Positions 12,352 through 19,945 of a stretch of 64,000 nt of DNA are shown in pieces. The position numbers were made by a program, and so were the translations under genes. Positions within the stretch are counted from its first letter, which is position 1. Each line of letters begins with the position of its first letter. Location of the stretch: NCBI GenBank assembly GCA_907165135.1, contig OU015569.1:8928001-8992000 (forward strand), written 5' to 3'. Origin of the DNA: Oikopleura dioica. Taxonomy: Eukaryota; Animalia; Chordata. Under the pieces are notes generated by a model. It saw only the letters and a program-made list of their open reading frames with translations. It did not search any database and was not told where the DNA came from.

Positions 12352-15300
12352 ATGGTGTTGGACTTCGAGTCGTGCATCGCAGAGAGGCCCGAATGGTGGG
12401 CTCGCGTATTTTCTGAGCATGAAGTGACGCTTTCAGTTGAAGGCAGAATTAAACCAGTCATCGCTGCGGTCGAGGTTTTGCTCAATAAATACCGCGAAAC
12501 GTCCGCTGCTGAAAAGACTTTCCGCGAAGAGCTCTCCAAGCTTTCTCTACTAAGCAACGGAAAAGCGAACACTTCATGTCTCGAGTCCATAGTGACAACA
12601 CTTCAAGACCTCTCGCAATCGAGGGGAAACTCGAAGAGAATTTAGATCGAAACGTGCGCAAAAGTCTTATAACGCTGTTCAATGGCGGAGATCATCAGAA
12701 TTTAAGCTGCAAGGCAATGAAAGAAGCCAGAAAATCCTTGGAACGGGTTGCAGAAGCAAAAGACGAAAAACTCGCCCGGTATCTAGCAATGACCAACACT
12801 GCCAAGCGAGAGTGGGAAATCAAAGGAAAATGGCTGTTATTTATAATCTTGCGCTGTTCGGTCTATAAGACGCATCTCCATTATTTCAGCCGATAAAAGA
12901 GGCGCATCAAGATTTTGTCTCGCTTCGAAAAAGCTTCCAAAATTTGGCGCTGGACTACACCTTTCGCCAAAATGTCTTTCACTTCGAACACCGAAATGTT
13001 ATCCTGAGCGCACTCGGTCAGATAATGAATGCATACCAAGCTTACCATAAGGTATTTAATCTTTTACAAGGTACTTATTAGTTTAAAAGCTATTCCCGAA
13101 ATAGGAATGTGCTGCGGCGACTGCGGTCGTTCAGCCAGAGTTGTTAGAATTGAGTCAACGGCAACAAGAGCTGCAGATGCAGCAAGAATCGCTCTCTAGC
13201 CGTTGGATAAAAGAGCAAGAATCTGCTCAAGGACAGACAGATCAAGGTGATCCATTAGACACAAGGTGTAATTTCTACATTGGTTTCAGGAGTGTATACA
13301 TGCCCCAATGCTGATGGCAAGATGGAAAACCCCGGCAAAGCTATCATTGAAGGATACCTGTACAAGAAAAGCCACACTAAAGTATGTACTTGTTAAGTTG
13401 TATAAACAAATATACTAACATGGTGGAAAAAGGGAATTATAAGTGTTAACTAACCAAAGTAATGCTAGTTTTAAGGAAAGATCGTGGTCTCAGGTAAAAA
13501 ATCAAAATATTTATCATTTACGGAGAGGGGTGAGATAACTGGTGTCTTGTATTCCTGGTGATAGGACAAACTAATGTTTATCTATACTAACGAATTCGTT
13601 TTAGTTTCGAAGCTGGCAACGACGCTGGTTCCGTGTAAAGGACGGGCACTTTCAGTATACGAAACGAGGGAGTTTTGAATTTGAAACGGTCACTGCTGAT
13701 ATTCGTCTGTGTAATGTTAGAGCGTCGCCAGGTATAAACACCACTCTGCATTTTCCACAAATTTGTATCAGATCTTGACAAGCACGAGCGTAGATTCTGC
13801 TTTGAGATACAACTCCCGACCCGGGCTATGCAACTTCAAGCCGAATCAACAGCGATTCGGGATGCATGGGTACGTGGGCTAAACTCGGCCATTTCCGTGC
13901 AACACAATCAAGCCGAAAGCAATCAAGCTTCTAAATCTTCAAATAAAAACGCAACGAAGAACACTCCGACAAAACCTCCGCGAAACGAACAGCCACCGCG
14001 CCTTGCTTCAAAGCTTATCTCAAACGGACTGAAAGAAATAGTAGCCATCGAGGGTAATGACATCTGCGCCGATTGTGGTGCAAAGGAACCAAGTTGGAGC
14101 TCTACAAATCTCGGCATAACCATCTGCATACAATGCAGCGGTACCCACCGAGCGTTAGGGGTTCATTTGTCAAAAGTACGTTCGTTGACTCTAGACTCGT
14201 GGGAGCTTGAAACCCTCTCTATCATGAAACGGTTGGGGAACGCAAAGGTTAATCGCTTCCTTGAATACAAGCTGCCGGTTAACCAGAAGATCGAGCAAGC
14301 ATGTAGCGCGGGATCGCGAACTGAGTTTATCCACAAAAAGTACGTCGAGAAATCATGGACAGCTGACATCGTCGACATTGCGACCAATTCGAAACAAATG
14401 GGACTTTTAAAAAGCCCTGCCAAGTCTCCAACGAATATGAACATAGACTGCTACTTAAAATATGCGATTGAAGAAGGAAATTTCCCTACTATTCTTGCTG
14501 CTACTTTTGCCGGAGCATCCCCCACCGCTAATAGTATGTTTTTGAAAAAAATAGAATATTTTTATTCATGATTAGTTGGCTCAGAAACGCCTTTGCATGT
14601 CGCAGTGTCTACTAAATCTCTGCTAACAAGTGAGCTTCTTTTGATGAACGGCGCTCAGGTTAATCAACAAGTGCCAACCCTGAATGACGGAACCGTTTTA
14701 AAACGAGCGATCAAGATGAACGATATTGCAATGGTTTCACTCCTCCTTAAGCGCAGAGCTTCTATCGGTTAGTTTCAAAATCTTTCCAGTTTCTAATGCA
14801 ATTTCTAGAACTCAAAGACTCATCCGGAAAGACAGCAATTGACTGGGCCCAAGAAAGCGAAGATGCTTATGTCTTGACAACCTTGCGCTTTAAAAAGATG
14901 ACGGATTTACTGATGCAAGATGGCGGTAATCAGCAAACTGAGCAGCAGTTATCTCAGATGATTAAAGAAAACTTGCTCGCTGGAATCAAAGAGGGTAAGA
15001 CAGGTTTTTCTTTAGTTCTATATTATTCTTATTCTCCCAGAGCTCCTCGGTAAACGCACGATAAAGCCATCACGTGATGATATTCTATCGACTCCGGACT
15101 CATGCGCAGGAAGCACATCAGAGGAAGATACTCTAAGCTATGCCTCTGACTTTGCTTCCAGCAAACGCGCACATGCTCAAAATAAAAAGAAAGCGCGGCG
15201 GTTACAAAGAAAAGCATCAAAAGAATATCATCGTCACATAGTAGAATCGTCCGACACCGACTGTTCTTCAGAACCGAACGAATACGACGGCGGCGATGAT

Positions 15301-15369
15301 ACTAATCCTGAAGACGAAAGGAATCATACACTGCCACAGGATTCAGAAAGCACGGACGGAATAAATTAA
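12352..15369 (+). CDS. ACAP: ArfGAP with BAR, PH and ankyrin domains (centaurin-beta)
   Basis: [12 protein letters not shown] start; [10 protein letters not shown]...FRSWQRRWF; Arf[50 protein letters not shown]; ANK ETPLHVA. One apparent 1-nt frameshift at about 12623-12629. Confidence 0.92.
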
Positions 15370-15712
15370 AACCGAAGCCAGAATTGTTTCAATGTTCACT
15401 TTTATGCTAGTTATCTTCATTCTCTTCTCGTTAACGCTGTCTAGCCAGTCTATATCGTTTATTCTGTCGATCAAACTGTATATATTGATTGGCCTTTCAG
15501 TAGAATAGTGAACTAATTTTCCACGAAGGCTATTTTCCTTGTTTCGAAAGTTTGCATTTTACCTATTCATCAAGCCCAAGAGAACGTATCCTCGTTAGAA
15601 AAATTACAATCTATCTACTGTAGATCCTCAGCCAATCTTGCACACGCAGTTACCACTTTCTTTTCGCTCCAAGAGTTACCAATTATATTCTTTTAACCTC
15701 AAATTTTTAAGG

Positions 15713-17957
15713 ATGAGCGATTGTTATGCTATAGCTGGGAAATGTATTGATCAACTAGGTCTAGGATGGGGGGTGATCGCTGGAGATCCGAAATGAGGCG
15801 CTCGAGATGAATCACCGATGAGTGGTGCGCGGGTTGTTTGGATCTCCAGAGCGCGGAGATCGAAGCTCGATCTCCAAATGAATCCCAGGGATTTAGTCGA
15901 TCTCCAGTTTTCGGTGATCGAAGCTCTGAATTTTCTCGAGTATCTATTTTTCTCGATTATATTCATATTTTGCAGGGACTTTGCGGGTCAGTATCTCAGA
16001 AAATAATAGTTTCTAATGCTAATCTTCAAGAAATTATCGCTCACCCACCGAGCTGAGTCTTTGGAAATTGAAACCGAACCAATTTTAAAATTATGTGATT
16101 TCAAGTGTTCAAAAATTTTGAAAACCATCTTATTGAGAAAAATACTCGAGCAGAGATAGTAAATATTACATTATTATCCAAAATTACAATCCATGCACAG
16201 TGCAAGTGACTTGATTTGACAAAAGATTTGAAATCTACACTGGAGAATAAGTATTGCCTGAGATTTTTAAGTTGATCCGGTCAGTCGCTTCTGATATCAG
16301 TAGGCTGGCAGAAAATTGTTTTAAAGTGACTCATCCGACTTCGGGGATAAAAAATTTTTGGATCTCCAAGAAGTGGAGATCGAGAGTGGTGATCGATCAC
16401 CGCAATTTCGGGGTGGAGATCGCGCGGATCTCCACGCAATCGGAGATCCAAAGAACCCGCGCACCACTCATTGGTGATTCCTCTCGAGCGCCTCATTTCG
16501 GATCTCCAACGATCACCCCCGATCCTAGACCTAGTTGATCAAGTTATTGCCAGAAAAGGAACACCAAAATCGGTTGTATTCAACGAGCGAAAATCAAAGC
16601 AGGTAATATTTTTTTTTGTGAAAAAAATATGACGATTTTTATTAAGACAAAATTGATCTACAAATTGGTAATAGAATCTCTCAAGTATCGAACTGTGCTG
16701 GAAGAGCTGCTCAAGAAAACACAAATCGGGAAAGAAATCAAAGGGCAAGGACCTGGGCTCGGCAAACTGAGCTGTGTAGAAACCTGTCACAGGTCCTGTT
16801 TCCTGTTTTTAGGGAACCTGTCTGAGTACCTGTGTTTTTACACAGCTCAGTTTGCCGAGCCCAGAAGGCCGACTCCTTGCGCTTGGATATGACTTTCTCA
16901 TTGGGGATGGTCTGAAGAATAAGAAGTATTTGAAGATATTCTCAAAATATAAAAGCGTGCTCAAAAATGGCCTGACACTTATGAAAGTAAAACGAAAAGC
17001 GAATTGCAATGAAGATCTCCTCCCGAAAGATGTGACAACACACATGCCAAAGTATGCACGAGTAAATATGCTGGCTGGAAAATCTGTGAAGGAAGTTGAA
17101 ATGTCGCTTCAGGAATCTTTCAATATATTGCGACCTTCTCCTCACGAATTCGTGCAAAGCGCTCTGGACATGTCAGCTAAAGATGTTGTTGTGGACCCGA
17201 GCTTGAGTGGACTCTTTGCATTTCATTCGTCCACGAATATTGCTGATTTGATATTGAACAAAGAAGGCTTTCTCATCATTCAAGATCGCGCATCTTGTCT
17301 ACCACCGTTTGTTCTAGCACCGAAAATCGGTGAAACTGTGCTTGACTGCACAGCCGCTCCGGGAAATAAAACTCACCAGCTAGCCTCGTGTGTAGGAAGA
17401 AGTGGAAAAGTTATCGCTTGTGAAGCCGATCCAAAGCGTTTTCGACTGCTTTCTACCAGAATGAAACAACTGTACGCTGGAGAAATCGTGGACAGTAAAC
17501 TTCAAGATTACCTTAAAATAGATGTAAACCAAAAGCCATGGTCAGATTGCACAAAGATTATGCTGGACCCTAGTTGCTCTGGCTCAGGAATGGCACATAG
17601 AAGGCTGATGCAAGAGGAAGACTCCAAGGAAAGAATAGAAAGTCTAGCGAAGTTTCAGGAAGAAGCACTTCTCAAAGGTAAGAAAAGTATTAAAAATGTC
17701 CCGACATTTATATATTAGCGACGACATTCCCAAACGCAAAGGAAATAACGTACAGCACCTGTAGTACGCATGATAGAGAAAACAATGAAGTTGTGAATGC
17801 TGTCATCGAAAAAGCACCGAATTGGGAAATAGCGAATGCCTTCGAGCGGGTTAAAACTTTCTGTAAAGATGATGTTACGAAAACGATATCGGTTCAGCCT
17901 TTCACTTCTGCTACAAATGGCTTTTTTGTTGCCCTGCTGAGAAGAAAAGAAAAATAA
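15713..17957 (+). CDS. NSUN5: 28S rRNA m5C methyltransferase
   Basis: MSDCYAIAGKCIDQ(LVDQ)VIARKG N-term; PKYARVN, IQDRASCLP, VLDCTAAPGNKT, MLDPSCSGSG, ITYSTCS, GFFVALL. Two introns are TIR elements. Confidence 0.92.
15755..16534. mobile_element. 780-bp non-autonomous TIR element inside NSUN5 exon 1 (intron-forming)
   Basis: About 90-bp TIRs beginning CTAGGTCTAGGAT, with roughly 5 mismatches by eye; flanked by TTGATCAA at 15747-15754 and 16535-16542; internal GGAGATC/GATCTCC motifs. Confidence 0.9.
16753..16864. mobile_element. 112-bp MITE inside NSUN5 coding sequence (intron-forming)
   Basis: 31-bp TIRs (CTGGGCTCGGCAAACTGAGCTGTGTAGAAAC) matching 30/31; flanks AAGGAC and AAGGCC look like a 6-bp TSD with one mismatch. 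Confidence 0.9.
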
Positions 17958-18037
17958 ATCTGAATATATTGAACAGCTTACTGTCTTGACTTTATTCAAT
18001 AAAGTCAAACTCGAAATACTCATAAATGTTAATATTT

Positions 18038-19945
18038 CTAGCAGCGGTAAGGTCTTCGGCGAATCGCAATAACTTCTCGGCATAGAGGGCATTCGTTAAG
18101 TCTTATAATAAGTTTTATTTCCATAAATGCGGAAAAAGTACCTGACGGCACAGTTGGAGCAGGTAATTTGATGCCAGCAGGGTTGAAATACAACTTCCTT
18201 CGTCCCTTCTAAGCAAACTACGCAGGCAGAGCTCACCTAAAAGTAGAATCGAATTTTATACCTGTAAGTTCCTAAAATGTTTACCTCCGGTTTATTTGTT
18301 TCGTTCAGAGGGAATGTTTTTTCAGTAAGTAAAGAGTTGGTCGTAGTAGTCGGTTTTGGAGAAATAGTAGGTCTGATTGAGGCAAGAGGGCTGAATGGCT
18401 GCAGCAGGTAAGGTTCATCGGTTGAAGAAACTGCTTCTCTCCCTGATATCAACGAGGACTGATCGGGAATGTTTGTGTTCGTATGTCGTGGAGAATCGTC
18501 TTTAGACGTATCTCTTTGTTCTCCCCTCAGTAAATCAAGAAGGGCTTCTTCTTCGTCTTTTTTCGTCTCAATGTTGAGCTGTGGATCTGCGGAACTGACG
18601 TCGACGCCAATAATAGATTGCGTCGGGGCAGATGGCGTAGAGCTAGGTTCAAAAACTGGCTCTAGTATATTTGCTGGGGAAGCACGGTTTTCACTTTCGC
18701 TCCAGATCGCAGCAATTGGGTGCTCACTATAGCTTTCGACCGACCGGCGGCCGATGACAATTTTGATTTTTTCCTTTTGATCATGGCTAAAATTGTCAGG
18801 CGAGTTCCAAGAGATGCGGCGGTCATCTGCTCGTGGGTCACTCCTTCTTTCCGATCTGTTACTTAATCAAATATTATTTATGGAGTAATGGGCAGTGGTA
18901 CCTTATAGAGCTTGCTGAACGGAAGATTTTAGAAATGGGCTTTCGGGTCGGTCTCCTGGTTTCTTGCATTGATGTGCGTCTATTAGTTTAATCGAGATAT
19001 CGCCCAATGCCGAGCTTACCTTATCTGTCTTATATCATTAGAGTCATGTACTGGCTGATCGTTAATTGATAAAATTTGGTCGCCAAATCGATAGTCATAA
19101 ATATCACCAAGAGAGCCTGGCTGCACCGACGTAACAAAAATACCGACATTCGTTGTCTGTAGGCCTAGCCCAAGAGGAGTTAACGGCTTCACATTTAGTT
19201 CCGTGATGATTTCTTTCATATCTCTGTAAATAAACAGATCTACTTCATTCTGACAATCTTTCAGTATTTCCTAGCTCAGAGTTGACAAAAGTTTTCTTAA
19301 TAAATATTTAGGTAGTTTTTTCAACTCTTCCTTTATTTGATTGACTGAAGTAGTTCTGTGGAAAGTAGGAATATTCCCTGGTACAACAACGGACCGAATT
19401 CGATCGCCAACTTTAAGTCCTTGTCGATCGGCGCTTGATCCTTTGATGACGGCCGTTACGATGGGTTCAGGCGCTACTGCACTGACAGGTCGAAAGCCAA
19501 ATCCAGATGATTTGTGACGTCTGAGGCGTATCTTGATCTTCTGCGGCGAGGCGCTCAGATTTTGGGTACGTTCAAGGTTTTCCAAGCTTCTAAAATCTTC
19601 GAGTTCTCTCTCGTCTGAAGACTCAGTATCATCTTCGGCCTTTTCGGGGGAATCGTTGAAGACAGGAGTATCAGTATTCCGAGAAGACCCGCTCGAGTTT
19701 TGCAGAGCATCCAAGAGATCATCCTGAAAGCTGCTACCTAATAAAACGATTTATCCTTATTATTACAATTTCTACGAGATAGACTAAAACTACTTACTCG
19801 TGGGCAGGTACATTTCTGCTTGCTCTTGTTCGATTTCATCAATAATCTCGGGCTCTAAATCACCGTCAACGTGTATCGAGCTCGCATCATCAAGATTGTC
19901 CTCAGCAAATGAATTTTCGACGTTTTCACTCGTGTCTTCACTCAT
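18038..19945 (-). CDS. Tandem PDZ protein with C-terminal RING finger
   Basis: PDZ1 SSGFGFRPV...GSSADRQGLKVGDRI; PDZ2 PLGLGL...VQPGSLG...FGDQILSIN; RING CVVC...FQPCWHQITCSNC...ECPLCR; GT-AG introns keep the frame. Confidence 0.8.

Follow-up and report, generated by a model that had tools for sequence, protein, structure and literature searches.

What becomes of a gene's transcript when a transposon has landed in its first coding exon? The question is raised by a 64,000-nucleotide stretch of Oikopleura dioica DNA (contig OU015569.1, positions 8,928,001 to 8,992,000 of the forward strand), which we call the window and whose own numbering is used throughout. In it, exon 1 of NSUN5, the gene for an rRNA methyltransferase, is split by a 780-bp element bearing terminal inverted repeats (TIRs). 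The insertion lies on the haplotype assembled for the Okinawan O. dioica and is absent from sister lineages. We lean towards the reading that the NSUN5 transcript loses the element by a cut near its ends, which would leave the allele leaky and not dead; we regard this as probable without being assured. Two routes of removal are considered, an excision triggered by the inverted repeats and ordinary spliceosomal splicing, and the two may act together.

The insertion in NSUN5

That a 780-bp TIR element splits NSUN5 exon 1 was proposed in a first-pass annotation made from the letters of the window, and the coordinates, the encoded domains and the empty sites in other lineages all agree with it. 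The element lies between codons 14 and 15, opens with CTAGGTCTAGGAT at 15755 and closes with ATCCTAGACCTAG at 16534, and it is flanked by two copies of an 8-bp target-site duplication (TSD). The features of the split exon are these, with the strand given where a feature has one:

15713..15754, + strand: NSUN5 exon 1, 5' part, from the ATG (15713) to CAA, 14 codons, MSDCYAIAGKCIDQ
15747..15754: left TSD copy, TTGATCAA
15755..16534: 780-bp non-autonomous TIR transposon with an 8-bp TSD, a hAT-like target preference and no family-matching open reading frame (ORF)
15755..15847: left TIR, with GGAGATC-type subterminal repeats inside
15759..15760, + strand: candidate 5' splice site GT (TAG/GTCTAG), 4 nt inside the element, predicted from sequence only
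15773..15774, + strand: competing GT (GGG/GTGATC), out of frame with the AGs at 16528, 16534 and 16543
15791..15793, + strand: TGA that ends the unspliced frame, in the ORF 15638..15796
16442..16534: right TIR, pairing with the left arm in the predicted RNA fold
16527..16543, + strand: three AGs in frame with GT 15759, ending at 16528 (+18 nt), 16534 (+12 nt, LVDQ) and 16543 (+3 nt, one Leu)
16535..16542: right TSD copy, TTGATCAA
16535..16602, + strand: NSUN5 exon 1, 3' part, with VIARKGTPKSVVFNERKSKQ after the TSD copy

The empty site, with a single TTGATCAA, is found in five marine-metagenome contigs (L031, L032, L062, L075 and L086), which represent two sister lineages (L031/L032/L075 and L062/L086). 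All five encode the identical 14 N-terminal residues. The DNA across the empty site reads ...AAATGTATTGATCAAGTTATTGCC... and the protein MSDCYAIAGKCIDQVIA(R/K)KG, and the empty-site protein that the first-pass annotation had given, MSDCYAIAGKCIDQVIARKG, is as it said. A scan of the metagenomes with exon 1 returned 39 matches, only three of which are real NSUN5 loci, and all three belong to the sister lineages, in which the site is empty. The query exon and the L031-type exon protein (P0001) share 89% identity, and over the 417-codon models described below both sister types have about 86-88% protein identity to the NSUN5 of the window. Four more distant orthologues (P0002-P0005) read CIDKVIARKG or CIEKVLAKKG at this place and lack any four-residue insert. 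In the protein collection searched there was no NSUN5 of the same lineage (the best match was the one 89% identical), no match for the ORF spanning the right end of the element, and no exact record of two window ORFs.

The host gene is identified as NSUN5 by the matches of its exon translations to PF21153, PF21148 and PF01189 (the NSUN5_N, NSUN5 ferredoxin-like and RsmB/F methyltransferase domains), and it is present in one copy in the genome. Downstream of the split exon it continues as follows:

16603..16646, + strand: intron 1, GTAATA...TTAAG, 44 nt, skipped by a read pair of RNA run X6 (other lineage)
16647..16745, + strand: NSUN5 exon 2, with the start of NSUN5_N (PF21153 profile positions 1-29)
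16754..16863: a further inverted-repeat element of 110 bp within the coding sequence, unrelated to the first
16864..17677, + strand: NSUN5 exon 3, with the rest of NSUN5_N, the ferredoxin-like domain and the first part of the methyltransferase domain
17678..17718, + strand: intron GTAAGA...TATTAG, 41 nt
17719..17957, + strand: last NSUN5 exon, containing the YSTCS motif and the stop codon TAA

With both mobile elements removed, the model has 417 codons and neither indel nor stop relative to the sister genes. The motifs DPSCSGSG, YSTCS and DCTAAPGNKT are all intact in it, as judged by eye against the orthologues. In the comparison with the sister lineages dN is 0.09 and dS is saturated, with a ratio of about 0.03. 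By these measures NSUN5 still looks functional.

The second element is a separate matter. It sits between ...EIKG and EGRLLALGYDF, has 31-nt arms that are 97% complementary, and is missing from all the sister-lineage NSUN5 genes. Sequences related to it elsewhere in the genome form the terminal 82 nt of a larger element, which continues AAAATCGGGTAATAAT.

The element family and its exonic copies

The genome searched comprised 64,281,565 bp in 19 sequences. The exact 13-mer terminus CTAGGTCTAGGAT occurs in it 55 times, against once for the reversed control, a difference far beyond chance. These matches resolve into 26 paired elements of 207-1048 bp, and each of the 26 is flanked by a perfect 8-bp direct repeat of its own, with no mismatch in 208 paired positions. 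Therefore, TTGATCAA is a true TSD and its palindromy is a coincidence, which settles the doubt raised in the first-pass annotation that the palindromic 8-mer might instead be part of the TIR. Eleven copies are full length (one of them, L048, with an extra internal segment). Their BLAST identity to the NSUN5 copy is 77-96%; a count restricted to aligned columns gives 88-99%, and about 93-99% once the divergent copy L012 is set aside.

In the NSUN5 copy the inverted-repeat arms reach past the ends of the element (15738-15847 and 16442-16551). Each is about 110 nt in length, their complementarity is 92%, and the direct-repeat families D1-D4 are found alongside them. The predicted RNA fold of the element has an energy of -390 kcal/mol, compared to -243 for shuffles (z = -25.6). 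A scan of 15300-18100 against Rfam gave no RNA family match.

With inverted repeats, an 8-bp TSD and several copies, the element is a cut-and-paste non-autonomous DNA transposon. Its target preference is hAT-like (nTnnnnAn), as is the 8-bp length of the TSD: T stands at position 2 in 13 of the 26 TSDs (p = 0.022) and A at position 7 in 14 of the 26 (p = 0.008), each against a base frequency of 29%. hAT ends are defined by the motif YARNG. The NSUN5 element instead terminates in CTAGG, and its repeats of about 110 nt stand in place of the short ones (10-25 nt) of that superfamily. A search for an autonomous partner, with a hAT transposase and matching termini, gave nine matches to the hAT transposase domain PF05699 in the genome; three of these loci were compared (L049-L051), and they have no sequence in common with the NSUN5 element. 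In one of them, L049, the ends could be read, and the terminus is CAGGGTGTCAAATCG, unlike that of the NSUN5 element. We therefore rejected filing the element as a hAT, given the misfit of the CTAGG terminus, the unusually long repeats and the unrelatedness of the genome's own hAT copies.

L049 itself contains a classical hAT of about 6 kb (L049 2492-8567, C5:13843991-13850066), with at least seven near-identical copies in the genome; others are at C1:636914, 641782, 732634 and 737494 and at C4:380299 and 393172. Its TSD is GTGTTAGC, it has the CAGGGTGTCAAATCG terminus, and inside it is a tandem array whose unit recurs about every 30 nt (L049 6479-6946). Within the NSUN5-element family, three related elements of 910, 949 and 1006 bp (L035-L037) lie within 15 kb of each other in C1:10876082-10891132 (L103, L104), among TTL and RabGAP-TBC genes, and this cluster may reflect local hopping. 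A transposase ORF was sought in the cluster, and only the host genes TTL and RabGAP were found there.

To see how the family as a whole behaves in coding sequence, we rebuilt the empty sites of all 26 copies, sought reading frames crossing them and checked the flanking pieces against Pfam. Six copies are confidently exonic:

L001: NSUN5, phase 0
L004 (C5:4372364-4373131): RA-domain gene, phase 2
L043 (C2:10266540-10266913): 570-codon ORF with a weak CNDH2_N match, phase 2
L047 (C5:12542501-12543410): WD40 gene, phase 2
L006: coiled-coil ORF, phase 1
L007: C2H2 gene, phase 1

Three further candidates were rejected as exonic: L041 (Vps52) is probably inside a 44-nt intron, L040 possibly inside a 51-nt intron, and L033 (GH31) is at an acceptor site. 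Copies in coding exons thus number six, and at most 11, of the 26, and the majority of the family is outside exons. By our own estimate, which was not computed, roughly a third or more of the genome is coding, and an exonic share of 6-11/26 is roughly that of unfiltered insertion into a gene-dense genome. The reported density is one gene per 3.7 kb (PMC8008620).

The phases bear on a claim of the first-pass annotation, that the element carries both splice sites in its ends in the manner of an intron. A splice at the CTAG/GT...AG positions would leave 4 nt of the element plus 8 nt of the duplication, a scar of 12 nt for every insertion of the family. In one phase in three, however, the CTAG of the scar is read C/TAG and gives an in-frame stop, and this is the phase of three of the six confidently exonic copies (L004, L043 and L047). 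Since the scar is 12 nt for all insertions and holds a stop in one phase of three, the stop-free outcome at NSUN5 had a 2-in-3 prior and is no evidence of an element built as an intron. That the scar keeps the frame follows incidentally from the terminal CTAG and the 8-bp duplication, and is not an adaptation of the family. An adapted "introner" family, whose CTAG/GT...AG/ ends had evolved for a harmless 12-nt scar, would have in its favor that each insertion, whichever its orientation, gives a 12-nt scar, the termini being symmetric. The phase data contradict it, however, and most copies are non-exonic, only 26 exist, all are young, and not one has become fixed as an old intron. We think this reading very improbable, and the idea of a designed element fails at the level of the family. 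Members that are mostly introns with the frame kept open, as introners have, are not what the family consists of, even where a GT and an AG borne by the element stand at its boundaries as at NSUN5 (GT 15759 and AG 16534, both candidates). Among the stop-phase copies individual G*-AG alternatives exist; at L043, for example, a GA-AG pair would remove the element exactly.

The family, then, is without sign of filtering for a CTAG/GT...AG splice, which is as expected if removal is independent of the GT/AG register.

Fate of the interrupted transcript

Read through without removal, the NSUN5 frame stops inside the TIR at TGA 15791-93, as the first-pass annotation had stated. One route around this stop would be the "SOS" type of excision, which is triggered by inverted repeats and independent of the spliceosome. 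SOS splicing was described in C. elegans and human cells, where it removes DNA transposons in exons from 90-100% of the host mRNAs (Zhao et al., Nature 2025, PMC12779559). Base-pairing of the TIRs is necessary and sufficient as the trigger, whatever the sequence, and the process resists a spliceosome inhibitor (PMC12779559). The cuts fall at several positions, within the repeats or close to them and rarely at GU-AG, leaving small indels only some of which are in frame, and the proteins AKAP17A and CAAP1 and the ligase RTCB are required (PMC12779559). Lying in an exon, the NSUN5 DNA transposon has terminal repeats able to base-pair into a stem of about 110 bp; with its exonic position and long near-perfect stem, it is therefore the kind of substrate treated in the SOS paper.

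The O. dioica genome encodes relatives of all three factors, each scoring above the Pfam cut-off: RBD_AKAP-17A (PF25015, 129.8 bits) in an AKAP17A-like gene at C5:10771373-10772059 whose frame is open across short introns, CAAP1 (PF15335, 41.1 bits) at C1:15195633-15195818, and RtcB (PF01139, 360.8 bits) at C2:4189849-4191311. These three core homologues have been kept in a gene-poor genome. SOS removal in O. dioica is something we infer from this homology, and homologues are no proof of activity. If it does operate, several junctions near the repeats would be expected at NSUN5, only some of them in frame, and the same route would also account for exonic copies in any phase. We hold this route to be possible, as a tentative choice that we rate slightly above the spliceosomal one.

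In the other route, the spliceosome would use GT 15759 with the AG ending at 16534, 16528 or 16543, adding 4, 6 or 1 residues, respectively, to the conserved N-terminal segment. The first-pass annotation had proposed the first of these pairings, and its arithmetic holds: removal of 15759-16534 (776 nt, with the AG at 16533-34 at the far end of the element) leaves CTAG and one TSD copy, 12 nt in all, and the frame reads ...CIDQ-LVDQ-VIARKG. On the sequence, then, its interpretation is partly supported: there is a real insertion with a real duplication, an in-frame GT-AG pair is indeed available, and the junction 15758^16535 is a candidate only. The strongest form of this route is a newborn spliceosomal GT-AG intron with 15758^16535 as its main product and LVDQ as its insert. 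A canonical GT and AG at the ends of the element, in frame and stop-free, speak for it, as do the three consecutive in-frame AGs. O. dioica also gains introns readily and has a permissive spliceosome, with 11-12% non-GT-AG introns and many lineage-specific introns (PMC8008620, PMC4122922), and a transposon origin of introns has been established for other eukaryotes and also for the larvacean Fritillaria (PMC11282704). What counts against the newborn intron in particular is that the equivalent splice leaves an in-frame TAG at three of the six exonic copies. Splicing by this route, in the newborn-intron form or otherwise, strikes us as unlikely, if well short of fanciful.

Several observations weigh against removal of the element by one or both of these routes. 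The donor TAG/GTCTAG fits the U1 consensus only at AG/GU. The competing donor at 15773 has the hexamer GTGATC, which is the intron-1 donor in the sister-lineage genes; it does not share a frame with the three AGs next to the 3' end, and its only in-frame AG partners are at 16488, 16587, 16599 and 16602. (A donor-site matrix was built from the short introns of the window that are supported by ORFs; it had 36 unique candidates and a weak consensus, and was dropped as too noisy.) In the predicted fold, the base of the RNA duplex of about 110 bp contains both of the proposed splice sites, which would be buried there. SOS splicing has, to our knowledge, never been shown in tunicates. No decayed exonic copy was found in the genome, which fits purging as well as tolerance.

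The RNA data add to these points. Three RNA runs labelled with the species name (X6-X8) gave two reads between them, both from X6 and at 90-95% identity, with none from X7 or X8. Since the X6 reads match the L031-type gene, these runs come from another lineage. The plankton metatranscriptome X1 contains the assembled lineage: one contig covers 17743-17941 with no difference, and another covers 16783-16958 with one difference, starting within the second element and continuing into exon 3 without being spliced. The latter may represent pre-mRNA or DNA. Exon 1 is consequently without RNA coverage from the same lineage, the reads of X6-X8 being of the other lineage and the X1 contigs falling elsewhere in the gene. 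X1 contigs that resemble the element derive from other copies, and one of them carries the flank of C2:9344858-9345249. That locus, L042, is a 392-bp relative with the same termini, of which the flank and end are in the contig, and its insertion is common to the assembled animal and the wild sample.

How long the transcript has had to cope with the element is also of interest. The NSUN5 copy has six private substitutions in 780 nt, and its terminal branch of 0.009 is below the diversity of 0.022 reported for O. dioica (PMC4122922). A genome search for decayed copies of the family found none, and all copies are young. L048 (C5:13971535-13972465), a 931-bp copy with about 160 nt of extra internal sequence, has the shortest terminal branch (0.0026) and is therefore the closest to the source of a star-like burst. 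The insertion in NSUN5 is young. Dating it by gene decay or by the terminal branch gives at most 0.9% divergence, which is too young to separate the hypotheses. Quite possibly it is polymorphic, or the assembled male was heterozygous for it; the assembly, OKI2018_I69, is of one Okinawan male whose haplotypes were merged, taking a 99.3-Mbp draft to 64.3 Mbp in 19 scaffolds (PMC8008620). Because the insertion is young and possibly polymorphic or heterozygous, the intactness of NSUN5 says little on whether the inserted allele works.

These same facts are the case for a reading in which the insertion is unprocessed, or processed unproductively, and what was assembled is a very young null or near-null allele of NSUN5, possibly heterozygous in that male; loss of NSUN5 is tolerated in other organisms. 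The 26 perfect duplications without a mismatch, the few private substitutions, the exonic share near that of unfiltered insertion, the phases that look random with the stop phase included, and the merging of two haplotypes from one animal all fit it. It would require, however, that the spliceosome and any SOS-type system both fail in spite of a usable GT/AG and a long stem, and that at least six conserved genes carry such alleles from one small family in one haploid assembly. The gene also shows no decay, though this is uninformative if the insertion is very recent. Taking both sides together, we find the null allele somewhat unlikely. If the element is in fact retained, this would be an ordinary young loss-of-function insertion in a single-animal assembly, and a caution against reading "introner design" from the ends of a transposon.

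Readings other than removal from the RNA and a null allele share little probability among them. Besides the adapted introner, they include transcription or translation that starts downstream of the insertion, and an artefact of assembly. No positive evidence was found for a downstream start; trans-splicing does occur in O. dioica. Between the element and Met-110 of the empty-site protein, a residue encoded in exon 3, there is no in-frame ATG, and a start at Met-110 would lose almost all of the NSUN5_N domain. A perfect TSD together with exact family termini could not be created by an error of assembly. To a downstream start or an artefact we give next to no weight.

We return to removal of the element from the NSUN5 RNA and to what it would mean. 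If it occurs, the insertion would be a chordate intron caught at birth, while sister lineages still show the empty site, and a natural substrate from a wild animal with active DNA transposons on which the SOS pathway could be set against the spliceosome. The two routes could also follow one another in time. The many young exonic transposons with inverted repeats in Okinawan O. dioica might first be buffered by an SOS-type hairpin excision, and those bearing by chance a GT and an AG at the stem base, as the NSUN5 copy does, might then pass to the spliceosome and become fixed as introns. This is speculative and we think it distinctly unlikely; if true, such a two-step birth of introns in a chordate would explain both the many lineage-specific and non-canonical introns of O. 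dioica and the uniformity of its intron phases. The phases of O. dioica introns are reported to be uniformly distributed (PMC3488318).

Comparison with known systems

Introners, known from Micromonas, Aureococcus and dinoflagellates (PMC11282704; Gozashti et al. 2022, PMC9860276), resemble the NSUN5 element in being multi-copy and in having inverted repeats, a TSD in coding sequence and splice signals borne at the ends. They differ in having hundreds to thousands of copies that are mostly working introns, removed cleanly and often with one splice site supplied by the TSD, whereas the NSUN5 family has 26 copies that are mostly non-exonic and would leave a scar, with a stop in one phase. Oikopleura is unmentioned in the main text of the 2022 introner survey (PMC9860276).

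A closer relative by host is the set of introns derived from miniature inverted-repeat transposable elements (MITEs) in Fritillaria borealis, as summarized from Henriet et al. 2019 in a later account (PMC11282704). The host belongs to the same animal class, and the introns have inverted repeats and TSDs at species-specific positions. According to that account, the Fritillaria spliceosome is thought to have adapted so as to neutralise transposon insertions (PMC11282704). As described there, those introns are AG-AC or AG-AT, short and numerous, and their splicing has been demonstrated, whereas the NSUN5 element is 780 bp long with a candidate GT-AG.

Non-autonomous hAT elements share with it the 8-bp TSD, the nTnnnnAn preference and the short subterminal repeats. 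As set out above, they differ in their ends (YARNG, not CTAGG) and in the length of their repeats (10-25 against about 110 nt), and the hATs of the O. dioica genome are unrelated to it.

Certain Ds/dSpm alleles of maize and Tc1 alleles of C. elegans have the element taken out of their pre-mRNA. These are likewise transposons in exons, removed imprecisely at the RNA level, with leaky alleles and small in-frame scars as the outcome. They were laboratory mutants with direct RNA evidence, whereas the NSUN5 case is a natural insertion in a reference assembly. The C. elegans Tc1 cases of removal have since been reinterpreted as SOS splicing (PMC12779559).

The SOS substrates themselves (Tc1::rsd-3, Tc3::unc-22 and HSMAR2-GFP) are like the NSUN5 element in that a DNA transposon with pairing TIRs lies in a coding exon of a host gene that is possibly functional, and the homologues of AKAP17A, CAAP1 and RTCB are also in the O. 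dioica genome. C. elegans still purges its exonic transposons over time (PMC12779559). The NSUN5 element differs in having an 8-bp TSD and in not being of the Tc1/mariner type. Unlike those substrates, it also has at the base of its stem a canonical GT and AG, which would make the spliceosome a real competitor for it.

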